Shown in pieces: positions 33,948-43,875 of a DNA stretch of 64,000 nucleotides. The stretch's first letter is position 1, and each line of letters opens with the position of its first letter. The notes below the pieces were generated by a model. The model ran no database searches. It was not told the DNA's origin and saw nothing but the letters and a program-made list of their open reading frames with translations. The stretch covers positions 186,001-250,000 of IMG/VR virus record IMGVR_UViG_3300044972_002389. One strand, given 5' to 3'. A program made the position numbers and the translations under genes.

Positions 33948-35725
33948 ACTTGATCATCCTCAAAAACGTCACAATCAAAAACTTCATGAGTGTGGGTGCT
34001 GTTACACAATCAGTTACTCTCACACAACCTGGCTTGACTCTTGTATTGGGCGAGAATCTAGACTTGGGCGGCAACGGCAACCGGAATGGTGTTGGCAAAT
34101 CGACGCTGATTTCAGCCATTTGTTATGCCCTGTATGGTCAAGCTCTTACTAACATCAAGAAAAACAATCTCATCAACAGCATCAACAAAAAGAACATGGT
34201 GGTGAGTATTGAGTTTGAAGCCCACGGCAACAGCTACAAAATTGAACGTGGCCGTGCCCCTAGTTTTTTCCGCTATGTTGTAAATGATGAATCAGTAAAT
34301 GAAAACAAAAGTGCAGACGAAGCTCAAGGCGAAAACAAAGATACTCAGAAAGAGATTGAGAAGGTATTGGGCATCAGCCACACCATGTTCAAACACATTG
34401 TGGCTTTGAACACCTATACTGAGCCATTTTTGAGCATGGGTGCTGGAAAACAGCGAGAAATAATTGAAGAGCTGTTGGGAATTACATTACTGTCTCAGAA
34501 GGCAGAAAACCTCAAAAAGCTTATTCAAACAACCAAACAAACTATTGAACAAGAAGAGTTCAAAATACATACTATCAAAAACAGCAATACACGTATTTTG
34601 AGCACTATTGAAAGTTTGAATCAAAAAACCCAACAGTGGGATACTCAACATCAGAACAAAATTCAAGACTTGGAAAATGCACTAGATGCTTTGAGTCATC
34701 TTGATGTTGAGCAGGAAATTCAAAGTCACAAAGACAATCTTGTGTATCGTGAACTTCAAACAGCATTGAAGAATGTGCGCAGCCAAAGCCAAACAAAAAC
34801 ACAGCATGGAACACAGCTGAAGGCGCAACAAAACAACTGGTTAACTCAGTATAGTCAAATTCAAGACCACAACTGCGCAATGTGTGGTCAAAAGATTCAT
34901 GACGAGAAACAAACACATCTGCTGGACGACCTTGAGCACAAAATTACCAAACTGGACAGCAGCATTCAAACACTGGAACAGGAATGCCTGAGTTTGACAC
35001 AAGAACTGGATGAGCTCATGGGTCTGTCTAGTGCTGTATCGCTAAACCAAACATTTTACAAAAGCATTGATGAGGCATATGAGCATCGAAACAGTCTCAC
35101 ACTTCTTAGTGGTGAACTGGACAAACTTAAGCTTGAAACCAATCCTTATCAAGCCCAAGTGGGTAATTTAAATGACACACTGCAAGAAGTCACTTATGAT
35201 TCACTAAATGAACTCAGCCAACTCAAAGACCATCAAGAGTTTCTCTTGAAGCTGCTAACAAACAAAGACAGCTTCATCCGAAAGCGTATTATTGATCAAA
35301 ACCTCAGCTACTTGAATCACAGACTGGGTGAATATCTAGCTGGATTGATGTTGCCACACCAAGTTAAATTCAGCAACGACTTGGGAGTTGAGATCATGCA
35401 TATGGGCGTAGACTTTGACTTTGACAGTCTCAGCCGAGGTGAACGCACAAGAGTTTGTTTGGCACTCAGCTGGGCATTCCGAGACATTTTTGAAAACATG
35501 AACACCAGCATCAACTTCATGGCTGTTGATGAGATCCTTGATGTGGGACTTGACAGCACAGGACTTGAAAGATCTCTAGAGACGCTTAAGGCTATGAGCA
35601 GAGATCGGAACAAGAACATTTTGTTGATCTCACATAGAGAAGAGCTAACAAGTCGCTGCGATCGAGTTTTGTATGTTATCAAAGAGTTAGGTTTCACTCG
35701 TTTCAGCTATGAAAGCGGTGAGTAA
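33944..35725 (+). CDS. recombination ATPase subunit (T4 gp46 / SbcC / Rad50-like)
   Basis: NGVGKST Walker A, CAMCGQ zinc hook, LSRGE signature, VDE Walker B, ISH. Confidence 0.93.
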   Translation: MNLIILKNVTIKNFMSVGAVTQSVTLTQPGLTLVLGENLDLGGNGNRNGVGKSTLISAICYALYGQALTNIKKNNLINSINKKNMVVSIEFEAHGNSYKIERGRAPSFFRYVVNDESVNENKSADEAQGENKDTQKEIEKVLGISHTMFKHIVALNTYTEPFLSMGAGKQREIIEELLGITLLSQKAENLKKLIQTTKQTIEQEEFKIHTIKNSNTRILSTIESLNQKTQQWDTQHQNKIQDLENALDALSHLDVEQEIQSHKDNLVYRELQTALKNVRSQSQTKTQHGTQLKAQQNNWLTQYSQIQDHNCAMCGQKIHDEKQTHLLDDLEHKITKLDSSIQTLEQECLSLTQELDELMGLSSAVSLNQTFYKSIDEAYEHRNSLTLLSGELDKLKLETNPYQAQVGNLNDTLQEVTYDSLNELSQLKDHQEFLLKLLTNKDSFIRKRIIDQNLSYLNHRLGEYLAGLMLPHQVKFSNDLGVEIMHMGVDFDFDSLSRGERTRVCLALSWAFRDIFENMNTSINFMAVDEILDVGLDSTGLERSLETLKAMSRDRNKNILLISHREELTSRCDRVLYVIKELGFTRFSYESGE

Positions 35726-35810
35726 TTATCTGTACTCCATAAATATAGATATATGCCGGTCACGACCCTGGCAGGTCCACCGGCTCTATCGCTTTAAGGG
35801 AGCAACAGCT

Positions 35811-36635
35811 ATGTCTATTTATCGTAATATCAAACCCTTTGGGTTTTATGTGTATGCCTACTTAAGAAAAACAACATCCAACAATGGTCCTGCAGGAACC
35901 CCTTATTATATTGGAAAAGGGACCGGCATACGTTACAAAGAAAACCACGGAACTCTACCTGTACCAAAAGAAGCATGGAGGATTGTTGTCCTTGAACAAG
36001 GATTAACTAATCTTGGTGCTGTTGCGCTCGAAAGAAGGCTGATACTCTGGTGGGGACGCCTGGATAATAACACAGGTATATTACACAATCGAACTGATGG
36101 CGGGGATGGGGCAGTTGGGAAGATAGTCTCTGATGAATCAAGAATGAAAGCAAGTGTTAACAATTGTGGCAAAAAAAGAAGTGCAGAAACAATCAAGAAC
36201 ATAAAAGATGCATTATCTCTTATCGACAGGTCAGGAGAGAATCATCCGTTATATGGCAAAAAGCATTCTGATGAAGCTAGATCTAAAATGAGCGAAGCTA
36301 AAAAAGGCAGGTCCTATGAAGAAATTTATGGCCCAAAAGCAGAAGAGATGCGAGCTGCACGCTCACAAAAATCTCGGGGACGAAGTCTGTCTGCTGAGAC
36401 CAAAGAAAAGATAAGTTTAGCAAATCGAGGCAAGAAAAAACCTGCAGGCTTTGGAGTCCGAATGTCCGCAGTAAGGTCTGGCCAAAAAGTCTCTGAAGAA
36501 ATTTTGAAGAAGAGAGCACAGATATTCGAAGCAACAAAACAAACTTGTGAACATTGCGGGAATATCTTTGGTTTAGCGAACTATATCAGATGGCATGGTC
36601 CTAATTGCAAAACTCAACCTAACCAACTACTATAG
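35811..36635 (+). CDS. GIY-YIG homing endonuclease with NUMOD3 repeats (Seg-like)
   Basis: FYVYAYLR...PYYIGKG..R, L.N.TDGGDG, GKKHSDEARSKMS; GGGAG RBS before ATG 35811; TAAATA at 35740. Confidence 0.88.
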   Translation: MSIYRNIKPFGFYVYAYLRKTTSNNGPAGTPYYIGKGTGIRYKENHGTLPVPKEAWRIVVLEQGLTNLGAVALERRLILWWGRLDNNTGILHNRTDGGDGAVGKIVSDESRMKASVNNCGKKRSAETIKNIKDALSLIDRSGENHPLYGKKHSDEARSKMSEAKKGRSYEEIYGPKAEEMRAARSQKSRGRSLSAETKEKISLANRGKKKPAGFGVRMSAVRSGQKVSEEILKKRAQIFEATKQTCEHCGNIFGLANYIRWHGPNCKTQPNQLL

Positions 36636-36650
36636 GCGATTCGATTGGGA

Positions 36651-37166
36651 TTATACACCAGCAGTATAACTCAGTTCAGCAATCTTCAGCTTGTTTTGTT
36701 CAAAAAATGGCTCAAACTCTGTTATTACAAAGGTTTTGTAACGTGCGTGGTTTTCAACCGTGAAGTCAGCCAAATGTTTTTGATCAAAACAAGCATAACT
36801 TCCTTTGTGATTGATGCGTATGACAACAAACCACAAATCTTCTGGATCACATGTGTCAAGTGTTTGCTCTATCCAAGCATCCAGTTGTTTGATATCTCCA
36901 TTGCACATGAGTCGATGCCACGGAAAGTCTTGATAAAACTTACTTTCAATCACCAGCTTTTTCATATGGGAAGGTGGAATGAGATCACTTTTGAAGTAGC
37001 TGATTTGCGTAGCATCCATAGTGTCTTTTCTCTTGGTGTTTGCTCCTCCAATGAAGGCACCAGAATTAGGAACCCTAATAAATTTGGCTTCATATAACGT
37101 TGTGAGAAACTTGGCTATCCGTAATTCGCCTGCATTTCCTTTTGCCTTGCCTTTGGACCCTGCCAT
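36651..37166 (-). CDS. Holliday junction resolvase (Hjc-like PD-(D/E)xK)
   Basis: K.KG...E..IA..L, RVPNSGA, SDL, IESKFY motifs. Confidence 0.75.
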   Translation of the reverse strand: MAGSKGKAKGNAGELRIAKFLTTLYEAKFIRVPNSGAFIGGANTKRKDTMDATQISYFKSDLIPPSHMKKLVIESKFYQDFPWHRLMCNGDIKQLDAWIEQTLDTCDPEDLWFVVIRINHKGSYACFDQKHLADFTVENHARYKTFVITEFEPFFEQNKLKIAELSYTAGV

Positions 37167-37205
37167 ATGTTTTTTCCTGTAATCCAGAAAAAGCTCTGGA
37201 AGTCT

Positions 37206-37234
37206 TTGATTTTATAGTTTTAGATGGCTATAAT
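37206..37234 (+). promoter_or_regulatory. sigma70-type promoter for the TnpB-like gene
   Basis: TTGATT-17 bp-TATAAT with GC extension. Confidence 0.65.
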
Positions 37235-37258
37235 CAAAATAACAAAAGAGCATTTCAA

Positions 37259-38068
37259 ATGAAGCACAACAAGCCACAACACCGCAGCATTTTTATTGTA
37301 GTTGATCCAGTAGATCAAAATCGGCTCAATAGTTTTTTCCGACAAGAGTTGGGATTTTACAATACCCTTGTAGGAACCTTTGGAAGTCGTGTAAGAGCAT
37401 TTCCACAAACTATTCTCAACATCACACACGATCAAGCATCACTCTTTTGTGATCTAGCCAAATACAATCTCAACATTCGCGAATTGGTGAAAAAGCCTCA
37501 AGAATGGCCTGAACAACTGAAAAGTTATTTTCCAGTTGCTTTTGACAGACTCACACAAAAAACAATTTTGACCGAAGCGCAAATTATGATGTTTGAATCT
37601 GCCGGAGCCAATCGCTGGATTATGATTCCAGAAGCCAAAAAACAGATGGCTAGAGCAGTTATTGATTTTTACAAAGAGCAAGCAGACATTTTGGCTCATC
37701 CCCAATCAAGCGATATAATTGAGGTGGCTTACAAGACACCACCCAGCAGCTTGAGTGAGTTGGAAATCAGCAACAAACGTCATGCACAGATCCCTCGTAA
37801 TGAAATCAAATACAAATACAACAACACTGAACAACATACAGAAATTTGGACTCCGTTAACTACAAAACCCATTATTATTCCGCATTTTAACCTTAACGAA
37901 TACAATCGATGGACAACAGCAATAGTCAAGCAAGAGAGTGGTAGATTCTGTGAATACAACACACCTTGGGTAATTGACTTCAAAAATACAAAAAACAATT
38001 ATCTTTTGAAATATCTAGACAGCACAGCACGTAGTCCAGGCAATTATAGAATCAGCAACTACGCATAA
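37259..38068 (+). CDS. 269-aa protein resembling the TnpB/Cas12f WED-REC half, with no RuvC domain
   Basis: N-terminal RSIFIVVDP.DQNRL..FF...LGFYN.LV, mid helix ARAVIDFY...YKTPP, beta-rich IWTP...TAIVKQ.SG...WVIDF; ends where RuvC-I would start. The ORF is solid, the family call is tentative. Confidence 0.55.
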   Translation: MKHNKPQHRSIFIVVDPVDQNRLNSFFRQELGFYNTLVGTFGSRVRAFPQTILNITHDQASLFCDLAKYNLNIRELVKKPQEWPEQLKSYFPVAFDRLTQKTILTEAQIMMFESAGANRWIMIPEAKKQMARAVIDFYKEQADILAHPQSSDIIEVAYKTPPSSLSELEISNKRHAQIPRNEIKYKYNNTEQHTEIWTPLTTKPIIIPHFNLNEYNRWTTAIVKQESGRFCEYNTPWVIDFKNTKNNYLLKYLDSTARSPGNYRISNYA

Positions 38069-38090
38069 CAGAGTATATTTTTAAAACATA

Positions 38091-38454
38091 GTGGCTTTAT
38101 ATGATGGTGTAGTGTCCATCCGTATCTACCAGGCGCGAAGGCCGGGGAAAATTGCGTATGAGGGTTTACGGTTCTATGCCCTCGCCACAAAAGTGAACAA
38201 AAAGGATCCAGCCTCTCACTGTCCCGTGACGCTGGAAGGGGTTCAGTCAACAGCCTGTCTGACTGAATTCCCTGCGTGTGTGATGAGCACATAACCGAGA
38301 AGGCAGCTCCATGAGCATAAGTCCGAGAAGAGAGTCAGGAACGCTGGAAATAGGTTCTCCGCCAGCTGGAAGCAATTCCCAAGACGAGACAGGCAGGCCG
38401 AAGCCCTATACGAAAGCCTTTTCACACTTCTCCTCCCGGTGGGGAGAAGTGTGA
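38091..38454 (+). ncRNA. candidate structured non-coding RNA (~365 nt) with pseudoknot
   Basis: At least six complementary stems, a loop-to-distal 8-bp pairing (38253-38260 with 38387-38394) and a terminal 12-bp stem (38422-38454); GC-rich island with no credible ORF; strand is assumed. Confidence 0.65.
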
Positions 38455-38574
38455 CTTCCTCCCTAACGAAATACCCAGAACTATTATCAGTCCAACAAGT
38501 ATCCTATTCCAGATCCAATAATATCATCAATAAGATCATTGAGATTCATACTAGATCACGCCCAGCTAAAATTA

Positions 38575-38820
38575 TCACTTCTTTGATTGAGCCTTCCTAT
38601 AAGCTTCGGCTTGCATCTCATAGTGTTTGGAAATAGTTCCACTCAAAGATTTCATCTGTGAAGTGGTGAGACGCCAAGCTTCACTGTAGGTGAGTCCTCC
38701 GTTCATGTAATACACTAGGTTGGCAATATCGCTTTCAATCATTTCCACTTCTTTTTCGCAGCTTCTCAGTACTTGGGTGATGGCTACATGATCACCCCTG
38801 AGAAGCTTTAGTCGAAAAAA
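38575..38820 (-). CDS. gp51-like baseplate/tail assembly ORF, probably the -1 frameshift extension of the upstream gene (not in ORF track)
   Basis: Open -1 frame FFRLKLLRGD...EMIESDIANLVYYMNGGLTYSEAWRLT...KAQSKK*. Confidence 0.75.
   Translation of the reverse strand, partial: FFRLKLLRGDHVAITQVLRSCEKEVEMIESDIANLVYYMNGGLTYSEAWRLTTSQMKSLSGTISKHYEMQAEAYRKAQSKK
38760..38820 (-). other. programmed -1 ribosomal frameshift signal
   Basis: T TTT TTC heptamer (38820-38814), 6-nt spacer, then a 10+7 bp stem-loop (38807-38760). Confidence 0.75.
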
Positions 38821-39641
38821 CTTGTGGGATCAAAGTCAATTGACTGGCTCCAAGTGTGTGAGCAACCGTCGCATTGAAAAGAGGTTTCGGTATCAATACC
38901 AGTTTTGTTGAGCTCTTTCAACTTGTCGATGATGGCGTTGGCACTGGTTGTGGGAATACCTTTCACAAACTCTTGAATGTATTCTTGATTGGTGACCAGT
39001 TCACCACTACTGATTATTTTGATTTCAGTTATGCTCATGGCCATGATGTCCAATGTGCGTTTGGCCATGTGATTCACTTGTTTGGTCACACTACTGATCT
39101 TTTCTGCATCAGTTGTGTCTGTTTCTTGTAACACTTTGATGCTTCTGGCTTGTTCCACTTCATTCAACAGTTGTAGATTTCTCTGCTCAAAGTTGTAAGG
39201 ACGCAGGAAAACTTGGAGTGCTCCATCTATTTCAATATAGGTGGGGCCTTCAACATAAGTTTGTGTTTCGATAAATGCAGAGAGGTCTATACCAAAGTTG
39301 TGCTCTTTTCCACAACTGGGACATGTGGTGTCTATTTCCATAGTTGACCCTGCACTGGCAATTCTTATGGCAACAAGTAGGGTGTTGATGTCAGGCTCCA
39401 CAAGCTTCTTGGGATCTTTGACTCCAGGAACACAGTTTCGGAAAACACTCAACAATGCATCGCCATTCAACAGCGCATCAGGAGTTTTCAACATGATTTG
39501 ATCAATAGCAGTCAACGGATACACTGCCATTTCGCCATTGGCTGAAGTCTCAAGGAAATCACTAGGATAAAATTTGCCTCGTGTTGGCAATTGTGCATAG
39601 GCCTTGGGTGTGTGAAAGTATTGACTCAATGGATTACTCAT
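38808..39641 (-). CDS. baseplate hub assembly / tail chaperone (T4 gp26-like)
   Basis: NPL..YF..P..Y..LPT.G.FY, KTPDALLNG, LVAIRIAS, CPSC...C..C, FDPTSFF end. Confidence 0.8.
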   Translation of the reverse strand: MSNPLSQYFHTPKAYAQLPTRGKFYPSDFLETSANGEMAVYPLTAIDQIMLKTPDALLNGDALLSVFRNCVPGVKDPKKLVEPDINTLLVAIRIASAGSTMEIDTTCPSCGKEHNFGIDLSAFIETQTYVEGPTYIEIDGALQVFLRPYNFEQRNLQLLNEVEQARSIKVLQETDTTDAEKISSVTKQVNHMAKRTLDIMAMSITEIKIISSGELVTNQEYIQEFVKGIPTTSANAIIDKLKELNKTGIDTETSFQCDGCSHTWSQSIDFDPTSFFD

Positions 39642-39727: not shown

Positions 39728-42052
39728 ATGAGTTTTACAGCTAGTGAATTGAAAGATATCAGCAAGAATTGGGCCCAGGAGCGCACTCTCGGAGAGTTGC
39801 GTGACAAGATGGCGTCAAACAACAGTATTTTGGCTGCTATTGCTAAAGAAAAGTTCAACTTAGATGCTGCAACTATTCGCTCATTTGAAGATGCTATTGA
39901 TGATGCCAAAGATGGCTTGACAGAACTTCAAAATAGTGCGGAGAAAGCTAAAAGGGCTCAGGTCAATCAACTGCGTCATGAACAACGCATGCAAGGCTAT
40001 GAACAGGAAATCAAAGGCAATTACAAACGCAGTGTTGATGATTTACGCTCAAGCTTAGACAAAATGAGTCGATTTGACAGCAGTAGACTGTATGAAGGTG
40101 TCACAAGTGGTATCAACAGCTTAAGCTATAATTTCCGTAAGGCAGATGGTAGTGCAACTGGGTTAAGCACAGCATTTGCTGGCTTGAACAAAGTGGTGGC
40201 TGTTGTTGCTGCTGGTGTGGGAATTTTTGCTAGCGGAATGCCAGCTTTTCAGGCCATGGCAAACACCGGTGTTACTTTTGGCGGCAGTCTTGAAAAGATG
40301 CAGGAAATGGTTGGTCGTACAGGTTTGAAGCTGGAAGAGTTTCAAGGACTTGTTGGGCAATTTGGTACTACAATTGGTGGAGTGGGTGAAGAAAATTTTG
40401 CCAAATTGATTCGGGCAACACAAACAGCTACTAGGGAGTTTGGTATGTACGGCCAGACGTCTCAACAACAGGCTGAGTCCGTTAGTTTCTTTGTGAACAG
40501 CTTAGTCGAAGGTGGGCTTTCATTCCAGCAAGCAAGCGCAATGAACGAACAAGGCACTGCACAATATTTGCGTGAGCTTACAGCACTTACTATTTTAACT
40601 GGCAAAGATAGAAAAACATTAGAGGCTAGACAAAAAGAGCTAGATCAAGATAGATTTATTAGACTTCGGGTTAGGCAATTGGAACAGACCAATCCTGAAG
40701 CGGCAGCAACATTTAAGAAAAACACTGGCCAATTGGCAATGGACATAGGGCCTAAATTGACAAGAGCCATAGCAGGCATGCAATATGGGCTTATGCCTCC
40801 TGACGAGCAAATGCGCGCCTTTATGAGCATAGGCGGGACAATGTCTGGAATGGAGCAATTGTCTAGGCAGCTAACATCAGGATCTACCTTAGACATGATG
40901 GAAGGAGCTGGGAATTTAAAACGTAATTTTAGCCAAGGACAGGGCTTAAATGATTTTGTAACACAGGCGTATCTGGGAAGTAAGTACGCAGGAGCAGGTG
41001 ACATAGCTGATGAATTATATGGAGACGCAGCACGGGCAAAGGCGGCTGAAGCGCAGCCAGGAGGTATGCAGAGGATACTTGATATCTTCACCGGAAGAGG
41101 TGGAAACTTAGATCAAGCTACTACTGCCATGCAAAAAGTGACTATGGATACTGCTCGTATCACTGGTGACTTCAAGGCAGCGCTCTGGGCAGCTACACAA
41201 CAGTTGGGCTTGTTTACGAAAGTTCTTGAACCCTTGGCAGCAGCAACTGGCGCAGGCGCAGGAGCAGCAAACTCATTTTATGGAATGGCTGCCAGTGGTA
41301 TGTCCGGAGCAGCTTCGGCCTTAATGACAGGAGCTGCTGTGGCATTGATGCCTAAATTGCTGGCAAGTACAGCTTTAAAAGCTGCAATACCACGGTTACT
41401 GGGAGGAGGAGGCTTGGGTTTGACTTCAATGCTGGGCTCAACAGGAATGATGTCTGGTATGATGGGCGGGGCTGGTAATCTTGCTGCTAGAGGAGGGTTG
41501 TTAGGAATGACAGGAAATCGCTTACTAGGTTCGGGGTTAAGTAGAGGCATTTTAGGAGGAGGTTTAGGAGGACTCGCAGGAGGGATGGCGGGCGCAGGAC
41601 TTGGTAGCATGCTGGGCCTTGGCTCATTTGGTAGTGGTGCCTTAGGCGTATTAGGTGGGGCAGCAGGCGGCTTCTTGATGGGTGGGCCGGTGGGGGCACT
41701 TGTAGGTGGTCTGGGTGCTGCACTACCTATGCTTATAAGTTCAGCAAGTGCATCAGAAGCAAGGCCAGGTGATCAAACTGGCAATGCTGGTGGTTTATTA
41801 CAAGATTCAACTGCACTTGTTGAAATGCAAGCAAGCAGCACGTCATATGTTTCTGCTATGGCTGCACTTGTAAGTAGAGTAGCAGCACAAGCCACTATGA
41901 CTAGTCTTGCTCCACCAATAGCACCGCAAAACGATGCACTATTAGGTATGGTCACTACCTTGAACAGCACAGTGGCAGCACAAACACCCTACATCCAAGA
42001 TCAAGCAAGACAAGCACGTATCACAGCTGGAATAATTGGTGACTTTGCCTAG
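39728..42052 (+). CDS. tape-measure-like protein
   Basis: 774 aa, helical, A/G/Q-rich with a glycine-zipper hydrophobic C-terminal region; adjacent to the gp26/gp51-like genes. Confidence 0.6.
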   Translation: MSFTASELKDISKNWAQERTLGELRDKMASNNSILAAIAKEKFNLDAATIRSFEDAIDDAKDGLTELQNSAEKAKRAQVNQLRHEQRMQGYEQEIKGNYKRSVDDLRSSLDKMSRFDSSRLYEGVTSGINSLSYNFRKADGSATGLSTAFAGLNKVVAVVAAGVGIFASGMPAFQAMANTGVTFGGSLEKMQEMVGRTGLKLEEFQGLVGQFGTTIGGVGEENFAKLIRATQTATREFGMYGQTSQQQAESVSFFVNSLVEGGLSFQQASAMNEQGTAQYLRELTALTILTGKDRKTLEARQKELDQDRFIRLRVRQLEQTNPEAAATFKKNTGQLAMDIGPKLTRAIAGMQYGLMPPDEQMRAFMSIGGTMSGMEQLSRQLTSGSTLDMMEGAGNLKRNFSQGQGLNDFVTQAYLGSKYAGAGDIADELYGDAARAKAAEAQPGGMQRILDIFTGRGGNLDQATTAMQKVTMDTARITGDFKAALWAATQQLGLFTKVLEPLAAATGAGAGAANSFYGMAASGMSGAASALMTGAAVALMPKLLASTALKAAIPRLLGGGGLGLTSMLGSTGMMSGMMGGAGNLAARGGLLGMTGNRLLGSGLSRGILGGGLGGLAGGMAGAGLGSMLGLGSFGSGALGVLGGAAGGFLMGGPVGALVGGLGAALPMLISSASASEARPGDQTGNAGGLLQDSTALVEMQASSTSYVSAMAALVSRVAAQATMTSLAPPIAPQNDALLGMVTTLNSTVAAQTPYIQDQARQARITAGIIGDFA

Positions 42053-42117: not shown

Positions 42118-43875
42118 ATGGCTTGGAAAAAATATTTCACAACAGTACCGAGTCAAGCTAGACTCACTGCAAGACTAGCAGAAATCAACAAAGACAACAG
42201 TCAAGGTGCAACCACTACAAAATTCAGCAGTTATTTGCCTGAAGTCTATGCTGGTGCTCCAAACCGAGTTGAACGCTATGTGGCTTATGAACAAGCTGAT
42301 TTAGATAGTGAAATCAATCGCAGCTTGGACACTATTGCTGAGTTCTGCACACAAAACCAAAGTGATGATGAGCCTATTCCTTTCCGATTTATTTGGAAAG
42401 GTGATGTTACTGAAACTGAAACAGAACTTTTGGCCAGTGCACTTCAACAATGGTGCAGCATCAATAAACTGAATCAACGAATCTTCAAAATATTCCGTAA
42501 TACTGTCAAATACGGTGATCAATTTTTCGTCCGAGATCCAGAAACCTATGAGCTGTTGTGGGTAGATTCAGCCAAAGTGGAAAAAATCATTGTCAATGAG
42601 GCACAAGGCAAAAAAATTGAACAATATGTGATTAGAGATTTGGATTTCAATTTACAAAGTCTAGTGGCAACCAACCCTCTTGTGCATGATCAATACAGTT
42701 TCCCAGGAGGTTACCCTCGTAGTGCGAACCCAGCAGCTGGTGCAGGCAACATCAACTATGGACAGCCCACAACACCTGGCGGCCGTACCAGCAGATTTTA
42801 CAATCCAGCCAACAGCATGGCAATTGATGCCAACCACGTGGTGCATCTCAGTTTAAGTGAAGGCTTGGATCAATATTGGCCTTTTGGCACCAGCATCATT
42901 GAAGCAGTTTACAAAACTTACAAACAAAAAGACCTTTTGGAAGACTGCATTCTCATTTACCGTATTGTGCGTGCACCTGAGCGCAGAGTGTTTAAGATTG
43001 ACGTGGGTCAGCTGCAAGGTCAACGTGCCATGCAGTATGTTGAAAGAGTCAAAAACGAAATTTACCAAAGGCGACTCCCAAACCGCACAGGTGGTGGCTC
43101 AAGTATTATTGACAGCGCCTATAATCCCATAAGCATTACAGAAGATTTCTTCCTTGCAACCAACAGTGAACAACGCGGCACAACTATTGACACTTTGAAC
43201 GCTGGCGAAAACTTGGGCACTATTGACGACTTGAAATACTTCAACAACAAGTTGATGCGCGGGCTGGGTATTCCCAGCAGCTATTTGCCCACTGGACCAG
43301 ATGATGGCACAGCAGTTTACAACGATGGCAAAGTGGGAACAGCATTTATCCAAGAGTATAGATTCAACAAATATTGCCAAAGATTGCAGAACAGTCTTGC
43401 GCCAACATTGGATATGGAATTTAAATTGTTTTTGAAGTTCCGTGGCATTGAGGTACACAGCAGTTTGTTTGAGTTGGCATTTAACGTTCCACAAAGTTTC
43501 AGTCAATATCGCAACATGAGCATTGACACTGAGCGTGTTAACCTCTTCAGTTCAGCTATGAACAGTGATGCAAGAGCTTACATGAGCAAGAGATATGCGC
43601 TCAAGCGTTATCTAGGATGGACAGAAGAAGATATTCTGGAAAATGAGCGGATGTGGAAAGAAGAAAACAACGACAAAGTCAAAGGCAAGACTGGCACCAG
43701 CCCCATTGAAGACAGGGGTGTGGGACTGGGATCAATAGGGATACGCCCTTCACCAGAGCCTGATTTTGGTATGGGTGGACCTGAGATGCCTCCTGAAGCC
43801 CCGCTTGAGACACCGGGATTTGAAACACCTGAAGTTGCTCCAGGTGCTGAAACACCTCCAACTGAAACACAGTAA
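42118..43875 (+). CDS. portal protein (T4 gp20-like)
   Basis: LLEDCILIYRIVRAPERRVFKIDVG, EDFF, LKYFNNKLMRGLGIPSSYL, IQEYRF motifs; TAAATA at 42085. Confidence 0.95.
   Translation: MAWKKYFTTVPSQARLTARLAEINKDNSQGATTTKFSSYLPEVYAGAPNRVERYVAYEQADLDSEINRSLDTIAEFCTQNQSDDEPIPFRFIWKGDVTETETELLASALQQWCSINKLNQRIFKIFRNTVKYGDQFFVRDPETYELLWVDSAKVEKIIVNEAQGKKIEQYVIRDLDFNLQSLVATNPLVHDQYSFPGGYPRSANPAAGAGNINYGQPTTPGGRTSRFYNPANSMAIDANHVVHLSLSEGLDQYWPFGTSIIEAVYKTYKQKDLLEDCILIYRIVRAPERRVFKIDVGQLQGQRAMQYVERVKNEIYQRRLPNRTGGGSSIIDSAYNPISITEDFFLATNSEQRGTTIDTLNAGENLGTIDDLKYFNNKLMRGLGIPSSYLPTGPDDGTAVYNDGKVGTAFIQEYRFNKYCQRLQNSLAPTLDMEFKLFLKFRGIEVHSSLFELAFNVPQSFSQYRNMSIDTERVNLFSSAMNSDARAYMSKRYALKRYLGWTEEDILENERMWKEENNDKVKGKTGTSPIEDRGVGLGSIGIRPSPEPDFGMGGPEMPPEAPLETPGFETPEVAPGAETPPTETQ

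Follow-up and report, generated by a model that had tools for sequence, protein, structure and literature searches.

A single gp26-like gene that most likely encodes short and long baseplate-hub assembly chaperones by programmed -1 frameshifting in a giant lake phage

We analysed a 64,000-nt window (positions 186,001 to 250,000) of the IMG/VR virus record IMGVR_UViG_3300044972_002389, which derives from a jumbo phage of at least 328 kb. This phage is related to PA5oct, PBECO4 and Atu_ph07 and has T4-type core genes, but it is not a close relative of T4, contrary to what the label "T4-like" in the initial annotation might suggest. The region of interest contains the following features:

38808..39641, minus strand: zero-frame ORF of 277 aa, a gp26-type baseplate-hub assembly chaperone with two Cys pairs (C107/C110 and C257/C260) and a C-terminal DPxSFF motif
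38814..38820, minus strand: slippery heptamer T_TTT_TTC in X_XXY_YYZ register
38808..38813, minus strand: 6-nt spacer (GACTAA) that contains the zero-frame stop codon at 38810-38808
38760..38807, minus strand: two-part stem-loop (10 bp + 7 bp, 9-nt loop, 5-nt bulge), the likely frameshift stimulator
38575..38820, minus strand: -1 frame of 81 codons plus TGA, encoding the gp51-type C-terminal extension (FFRLKLL...YYMNGGLTYSEAWRLT...)
39728..42052, plus strand: divergently transcribed 774-aa gene, probably the tape measure protein
42118..43875, plus strand: T4-type portal protein gp20 (PF07230, E 8.4e-101)

The gp26-like ORF ends in ACA AGT TTT TTC GAC TAA, so that the heptamer lies in register with the zero frame and the hairpin begins 6 nt downstream. 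The hairpin consists of AGCUUCUCAG-GGGUGAU, a loop CAUGUAGCC and AUCACCC-(AAGUA)-CUGAGAAGCU. The 91-nt context folds at -34.4 kcal/mol, against a mean of -17.4 for shuffled sequences (z -5.3), and none of 200 shuffles folds as well. The -1 frame is open from 38820 to the TGA at 38577-38575, and its first possible starts are GTG at 38748 and ATG at 38742, 24-26 codons after the slip site. The predicted trans-frame product is 276 + 79 = 355 aa with the junction ...DPTSFF/RLK, where the 79 aa are the residues after FF. These observations confirm every element placed here by the initial annotation, including the lengths of 277 and about 355 aa that it gave for a short/long chaperone pair. The hairpin is not an intrinsic terminator, as it has no T tract after the stem and a terminator scan does not flag it. 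Rfam and tRNA scans of the window found nothing.

The 277-aa ORF belongs to the T4 gp26/gp51 family, as it matches PF12322 (T4_baseplate) with 65.9 bits against a cut-off of 24.5 (E 5.5e-18) and phrog_150 with an E-value of 4.5e-20. It is the only PF12322 gene in the 328,603-bp phage record. An AlphaFold2 model of the short form had a pLDDT of 93 and a pTM of 0.87, but comparison with the PDB by Foldseek and VIA-align gave no meaningful fold match. Only its helical hairpin at residues 150-205 matched generic coiled coils, and no sequence relatives were found in the PDB. The assignment of the divergent 774-aa gene as tape-measure-like, which was also proposed in the initial annotation, is less certain. 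It rests on conserved position, size and composition, and on a language-model lead: the nearest named clusters in the ESM Atlas are TMP_3 / PhageMin_Tail at 0.93. A divergent ORF of 688-822 aa is conserved at this position in at least 24 distinct loci and in four of the five isolate loci that we retrieved (PA5oct, Phosso, PBECO4 and Munch, but not Atu_ph07), and the PA5oct copy carries an ESI-MS/MS note as a structural protein. However, Pfam and PHROGs searches gave no hit, and BLASTP detected no similarity to T4 gp29.

Next, we asked whether the junction is conserved in related phages. All 85 related jumbo-phage loci (73 distinct junctions, 30-50% protein identity) carry an in-register slippery heptamer in the last 3-13 codons, which is T_TTT_TTC, A_AAT_TTT or T_TTT_TTT. 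Elsewhere in 73 related gp26-like ORFs, such heptamers occupy only 0.53% of codon positions, which makes chance very unlikely. The codon before TTT TTC/T ends in T in 59 of 59 cases, although it encodes eight different amino acids and the background frequency of T at third codon positions is 34%. Thus, slipperiness is conserved rather than the sequence itself. The -1 frame is open for 72-95 codons in all loci and is conserved from its first residues (FFRxxLLxxxPEEI...YMRGG..EAWxLSxxER), but it has no conserved start codon. In PA5oct it contains no ATG, GTG or TTG, and in many loci the first ATG is the conserved Met at about codon 39.

Uninterrupted stems of at least 9 bp start 3-9 nt after the heptamer in 47% of the jumbo-phage loci, compared with 3.6% of control positions, and the position of the 5' arm is fixed while the 3' arm moves. 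In eight sequences with the same pairing register, 90.9% of cells pair against 33-43% with slid partners, and 6 of 11 pairs show compensatory changes. As these eight sequences were chosen because they pair in one register, the percentage paired is biased upward. Strain variants at 38758, 38772 and 38789 fall in unpaired positions of the window's hairpin.

To investigate the origin of the -1 peptide, we compared it with T4 gp51. Pfam and PHROGs scans of the 81-aa peptide alone found nothing usable, and an hhalign comparison of its profile with T4 gp51 alone was weak (E 0.089). However, a profile of seven T4-type gp51 C-termini aligned with the -1 peptide profile with a probability of 92% (E 6.2e-7), revealing that the -1 peptide is homologous to the C-terminal extension of gp51. 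The gp51-like reading in the initial annotation was therefore supported, with one qualification. T4 gp51 is not just the downstream piece but a full gp26 paralogue plus this extension: T4 gp26 and gp51 both match PF12322 (8.8e-64 and 3.9e-52). So the long frameshift product corresponds to the whole of gp51 and the short product to gp26, with the FF motif at the boundary between core and extension. The extension in this clade is about 25 residues longer than that of T4. An HMM search of 1.84 billion proteins with the -1 peptide gave 767 hits. About 20 of the top 150 were located at the C-terminus of 320-351-aa proteins, and all six full-length ones checked are PF12322-positive, which shows that natural single-ORF fusions of the two parts exist. 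One of the fusions sits next to a short paralogue. The fused protein P0108 does not provide independent support, as it comes from a long-read contig with a T7 run and a garbled upstream frame.

Nine of nine genomes with the heptamer have one such gene, whereas T4 and RB16, which have a full-length gp51, have two. In four of six such phages checked, the gp26 gene has no C-terminal heptamer, and T4 encodes FF as TTC TTT after a G. In T4 the two forms are encoded by two diverged, divergently transcribed paralogous genes.

The same junction is not restricted to jumbo phages. The heptamer and the -1 frame are kept in 80 of 80 cyanophage-type loci, and the peptide matches 572 isolate records. In cyanophages and in phiM9-, Melnitz- and KVP40-type phages (phrog_634), a homologous peptide occurs in the same position and the same -1 frame relative to gp26, with the same T_TTT_TTY/G heptamer. 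The downstream stem is much less general in the cyanophage-type group: stems of at least 10 bp are found in 18% of loci against 3.7% of controls, with no excess at lower cut-offs, and many of these loci have an ATG at codon 5 or 8.

Together, these results are best explained by a single gene for a baseplate-hub assembly chaperone of the T4 gp26/gp51 family that gives two proteins by -1 programmed ribosomal frameshifting. We consider this very likely, although it is inferred from sequence comparison and not from protein-level evidence. In this view, most ribosomes would read AGT TTT TTC GAC and stop, giving the 277-aa counterpart of T4 gp26. A fraction would pause with the two tRNA-Phe on T_TTT_TTC, held up by the stem-loop, slip back one base and continue for 79 more codons, giving a 355-aa form whose helical C-terminal extension is the counterpart of the one that sets T4 gp51 apart from gp26. 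Frameshift efficiency would then fix the short-to-long ratio, as in the lambda G/GT pair. T_TTT_TTC is probably not among the most efficient heptamers in E. coli, and the host of this phage is unknown. The chaperone role is likewise inferred from T4, where gp26 and gp51 are listed as hub assembly chaperones and gp51 is absent from the finished particle (PMC3004832).

Alternatively, the small downstream ORF may be translated on its own, from its internal GTG/ATG or by termination-reinitiation coupling at the gp26 stop, which would give a free peptide of about 57-80 aa. In some phages an ATG indeed overlaps or adjoins the gp26 stop (ATGA in Phosso and Atu_ph07, TAATG in PBECO4), and many GenBank records annotate a separate "baseplate hub assembly catalyst". 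However, start codons are not conserved in position, PA5oct has none in 75 codons, and in many loci the first ATG is halfway through the conserved domain. Amino-acid conservation begins at the FF inside the heptamer, upstream of any start, and in the window 24 conserved codons precede the GTG. Independent initiation does not explain the invariant T before TTT TTC, the alternative heptamers or the covarying stem, while the natural fusions and T4 gp51 show that the extension works when attached to the core. This makes two separate genes unlikely.

Transcriptional slippage, in which RNA polymerase adds one U in the T6 run, would yield the same proteins and seems equally unlikely. The site is a homopolymer run, and the contig with T7 that encodes P0108 reads straight through as a fusion, but its upstream reading frame is also broken, so this T7 is probably a homopolymer error. 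The run is only 6 T, and 5 T in the A_AAT_TTT class, whereas efficient slippage by bacterial RNA polymerase is generally expected to need longer runs. Moreover, the conserved feature is the X_XXY_YYZ register plus a stem 3-9 nt downstream, which ribosomal frameshifting needs and slippage does not. Finally, although homopolymers are error-prone and single-ORF versions exist in other phages, a sequencing artefact or decaying gene is contradicted by contigs from four independent lake-water metagenome runs without insertion or deletion in the T run, by identical IMG/VR contigs from other samples, and by the same architecture in the jumbo-phage and cyanophage-type loci, where the -1 frame is conserved at the protein level and the zero-frame stop always follows within 13 codons.

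At the sequence level, the arrangement follows the logic of lambda gpG/gpGT and the conserved tail-assembly-chaperone frameshift of long-tailed phages (Xu, Hendrix & Duda 2004, Mol Cell 16:11), as the initial annotation proposed. As there, a -1 shift on an X_XXY_YYZ heptamer near the 3' end of a tail-assembly gene would give a short and a C-terminally extended product with a common N-terminus, the gene lies beside the tape-measure-like gene, and the products' T4 counterparts are assembly factors rather than virion parts. However, the protein family is unrelated, as no Phage_TAC or gpG-like hit was found in the Pfam and PHROGs searches, and the short form is 277 aa rather than about 100-140 aa. 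The gene is also transcribed divergently from the tape-measure-like gene (39641 on the minus strand against 39728 on the plus strand) instead of lying just upstream of it in the same direction, and the link to the tape measure is positional only. We found no report of a gp26/gp51 frameshift in a literature search that did not cover most subscription journals.

These results give a simple account of two classical but poorly understood T4 genes, as gp51 is gp26 plus an extension, and extend the short/long chaperone rule of tail assembly to an unrelated protein family. It is somewhat more likely than not that the gp26/gp51 system is the T4-superfamily counterpart of the lambda G/GT pair. The ancestral state may have been one PF12322 gene with a -1 frameshift, still used by jumbo phages (PA5oct, PBECO4/121Q, Atu_ph07 and relatives), cyanophages and many other T4-related phages, with T4 and its close relatives having replaced recoding by gene duplication. 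In that case, the apparent exception of T4-type phages to the conserved tail-assembly frameshift would disappear, and the puzzling "catalytic" gp51 would simply be the long form of a short/long chaperone pair whose ratio matters. The junction adds a conserved recoding site to a large and much-studied group of phages, including marine cyanophages and jumbo phages under study for therapy. In existing records of these phages, the site is annotated as two genes or missed altogether, and in cyanophages and in phiM9-, Melnitz- and KVP40-type phages the -1 peptide is annotated as an independent "gp51" gene of 47-60 aa or left unannotated. These tiny ORFs, like the 57-aa ORF called in the window, are most likely not free-standing proteins.

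On the minus strand, the window contains an ORF that ends with the codons ACA AGT TTT TTC GAC TAA together with the elements of a candidate -1 frameshift site, which we located as follows:

39641..38808, minus strand: zero-frame ORF of 277 codons.
38820-38814, minus strand: heptamer T_TTT_TTC, in X_XXY_YYZ register.
38807 to 38760, minus strand: two-part hairpin, beginning six bases after the heptamer (GACTAA, which includes the stop).
38820 to the TGA at 38577-38575, minus strand: -1 frame, open for 81 codons.
38748 (GTG) and 38742 (ATG), minus strand: first possible starts in the -1 frame, 24-26 codons in.

The 91-nt context folds at -34.4 kcal/mol, against -17.4 +/- 3.2 kcal/mol for dinucleotide shuffles (z -5.3; none of 200 shuffles folds as well). 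A tandem slip would give 276 + 79 = 355 residues with the junction ...DPTSFF/RLK. The coordinates and numbers of the initial annotation, which had proposed a programmed -1 frameshift fusing gp26-like and gp51-like ORFs, are all correct. In the minimum-energy fold of 38750-38820 (minus strand), the U run of the heptamer itself pairs with the A-rich stretch CGAAAAAG just after the hairpin, which extends the helix over the slip site.

Next, we focused on what the two frames encode. The zero-frame product matches Pfam PF12322 (T4_baseplate; 65.9 bits, cut-off 24.5) and phrog_150 'baseplate hub', whereas the -1 peptide alone hits no family. Residues 76-156 of the zero-frame product (38811-39641, minus strand) also show a weak match to phrog_1854 'PmgB-like head morphogenesis' (E 7.4e-5). 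As P1 PmgB is essential for morphogenesis and has no assigned role (PMC9024508), it may be a distant relative of this chaperone family. The neighbours on the plus strand are a divergently transcribed 774-aa gene (39728..42052) and a T4-type portal gene (PF07230, E 8e-101). The window is part of a 328,603-bp IMG/VR phage record that is also found in lake-water metagenomes. The closest cultured relatives of the gp26-like protein are the jumbo phages PA5oct (37% identity), Phosso, Atu_ph07, Munch and the PBECO4/121Q group. Of the five loci examined from these, four (PA5oct, Phosso, PBECO4 and Munch) share the order portal / large structural protein / gp26-like / small ORF, whereas Atu_ph07 does not.

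To test the frameshift comparatively, we collected 5 isolate loci and 80 IMG/VR loci at about 30-50% protein identity, which gave 73 distinct junction sequences. Every locus has an in-register slippery heptamer within the last 3-13 codons of the gp26-like ORF. Most are T_TTT_TTC, 14 distinct junctions have A_AAT_TTT and 2 have T_TTT_TTT. Elsewhere in the same ORFs, in-register heptamers occupy 0.53% of codon positions. The codon before TTT TTC/T ends in T in all 59 such junctions, although it encodes eight different amino acids (N, S, H, D, T, G, L and R) and T makes up 34% of third positions in these genes, so the nucleotide is conserved and not the residue. The -1 frame is open for 72-95 codons in every locus, and an alignment of the -1 peptides shows that it is conserved as protein from its very first residues (FFRxxLLxxxPEEI ... 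YMRGG..xEAWxLSxxER). There is no conserved start codon: PA5oct has no ATG, GTG or TTG anywhere in its 75-codon -1 frame, and in many loci the first ATG is the conserved Met in the middle of the domain.

The sequence downstream of the heptamer was examined in the same loci. The 75 nt after the heptamer fold better than same-length windows inside gp26 (mean -18.0 against -11.5 kcal/mol), and 64% of loci have z below -2. An uninterrupted helix of at least 9 bp starts 3-9 nt after the heptamer in 47% of loci, against 3.6% of 2,256 control positions. The 5' arm is fixed in place and encodes the conserved x-L-L, whereas the 3' arm lies 20-60 nt away at different places in different clades, with matching sequence changes. 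For eight sequences that pair in the same register, 90.9% of cells pair, against 33-43% when the partners are slid. As these eight were chosen because they pair in one register, the percentage paired is biased upward, and the informative part is the compensatory double changes seen in six of 11 pairs. In strains of the window's own phage, the variants at 38758, 38772 and 38789 all fall in unpaired positions. The hairpin has no T tract and is not flagged as a terminator.

Two other routes to expression of the -1 frame seem about equally unlikely. The first is independent translation of the small ORF. A few relatives have ATGA or TAATG at the gp26 stop, and re-initiation cannot be excluded for those, but it cannot explain the family. 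The second is transcriptional slippage, which would give the same proteins. One contig (related locus L103, 1898-2683, encoding protein P0108) has a T7 run at the slip site and reads ...DPASFFRRKLL... as one ORF, which shows what a +1U transcript or the trans-frame protein would look like. However, this is a long-read contig with a garbled upstream frame, so the T7 run is probably a homopolymer error. An artefact or pseudogene is very unlikely.

We then compared the locus with T4 genes 26 and 51, which are divergent neighbours in T4. Both products match PF12322 over their first ~200 residues (gp26 at 8.8e-64 and gp51 at 3.9e-52). gp51 is therefore a gp26 paralogue with about 48 extra C-terminal residues. 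A profile of that extension from seven T4-type phages aligns with the -1 peptide profile at 92% probability (E 6.2e-7), with the core YSLxxIxxMxPxERxIxLxLIEK against GGxSxxEAWxMSxxRxxxxKxI. With a looser setting the alignment extends to FKLLxNPDEI against xLLxxxPExI. T4 gp51 alone had given only E 0.089. An HMM of the -1 peptides, searched against 1.84 billion proteins, found 767 hits, and about 20 of the best 150 lie at the C-terminus of 320-351-aa proteins. The six full-length ones that were checked have PF12322-positive N-terminal parts. These are natural single-ORF versions of the predicted trans-frame protein, and one sits directly after a 329-aa short-type paralogue. The metagenomic contig that carries it (related locus L100, 51-2051) has tandem PF12322 paralogues, in which the 329-aa short type, which lacks the Cys pairs, is followed by a 336-aa long type with the extension in frame; the short one still has AAT TTT TTA (T_TTT_TTA) five codons before its stop. 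An AlphaFold2 model of one natural fusion is confident (pLDDT 90.7) and predicts the extension as four helices (residues 256-331), and the short form of the window models at pLDDT 93.

The number of PF12322 genes differs between these phages. The window's genome, PA5oct, Phosso, Atu_ph07, PBECO4, Melnitz-3, phiM9, AsFcp_4 and S-WAM2 each have exactly one PF12322 gene and carry the heptamer, whereas T4 and RB16, which have a full-length gp51, have two. In T4, 44RR, an Acinetobacter phage and Pm5461, gp26 has no slippery heptamer at its C-terminus, and T4 keeps the FF motif but writes it GAG TTC TTT. This is the pattern expected if recoding and duplication are two alternative ways to make a short and a long form. 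Interestingly, in RB16 (L106, 1637-2194) and KP13MC5-1 (L109, 1641-2195), which already have a full-length gp51, gp26 carries the classical heptamer T_TTA_AAG four to five codons before its stop. The -1 frame does not join gene 25 there, and the heptamer may be vestigial or chance.

The same junction is present in Melnitz-3 (Kyanoviridae; T_TTT_TTT), phiM9 (Pootjesviridae; T_TTT_TTG) and Aeromonas phage AsFcp_4 (T_TTT_TTC), whose -1 frames encode clearly gp51-C-terminus-like peptides. Among distant T4-related phages, the gp26 heptamer and the -1 gp51-like ORF are also carried by KVP40-type vibriophages and Angelvirus. In 80 of 80 distinct cyanophage-type IMG/VR loci, the heptamer and a 61-71-codon -1 ORF are present (one -1 ORF is cut at 44 codons by the end of its contig), whereas the +1 frame stays open for only 3-24 codons. 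The downstream stem is much less general in that group. The Melnitz -1 peptide matches 572 isolate records from its first residue, including Synechococcus (378), 'Cyanophage' (61), Vibrio (51), Prochlorococcus (24), Rhizobium (19) and others. There the piece is annotated as a tiny separate 'baseplate hub assembly catalyst' gene or not annotated at all, and none of the records that we examined has a joined CDS.

What is known of function concerns T4, where gp26 and gp51 are listed as hub assembly chaperones and gp51 is required for assembly but absent from the particle (PMC3004832). Two Acinetobacter phage records even label them 'tape measure protein assembly chaperone'. In the window, the divergent 774-aa neighbour, which the initial annotation called tape-measure-like, is probably the tape measure protein. 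This is suggested by its conserved position and size, the ESI-MS/MS note on the PA5oct copy and its Gly/Ala/Met-rich C-terminal third; its nearest named clusters in the ESM Atlas are TMP_3 / PhageMin_Tail at 0.93, which is a lead only. It has no detectable similarity to T4 gp29 and no family hit. The proposal of the initial annotation that the pair follows the logic of lambda G/GT is thus well supported, on sequence evidence, at the level of gene expression, whereas at the level of binding partners it is an inference. The gene is a member of PF12322 and not of any known tail-assembly-chaperone family by sequence or fold. Its position relative to the tape-measure-like gene, divergent rather than upstream and co-directional, also differs from the G/GT rule. 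The mechanism and the logic are classical, whereas the protein family, the gene arrangement, the reinterpretation of T4 gp26/gp51 and the breadth of unannotated occurrence appear to be new: full-text searches that did not extend to most subscription journals found no description of a frameshift in gene 26/51 of any T4-related or jumbo phage.

Beyond the -1 ORF, the stretch 37142-38575 contains a 308-aa plus-strand ORF (37142-38068) without a family hit, followed by about 500 nt with no convincing ORF and no Rfam match. This stretch contains a 12-bp inverted repeat (38454-38443 with 38433-38422) without a T tract, about 120 nt downstream of the -1 ORF stop. A further 308-aa ORF at 35709-36635 (plus strand) has three NUMOD3 motifs (PF07460, E 2.8e-15) and looks like a homing endonuclease. 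It lies next to a PDDEXK / RusA-like resolvase gene at 36651-37166 (minus strand).
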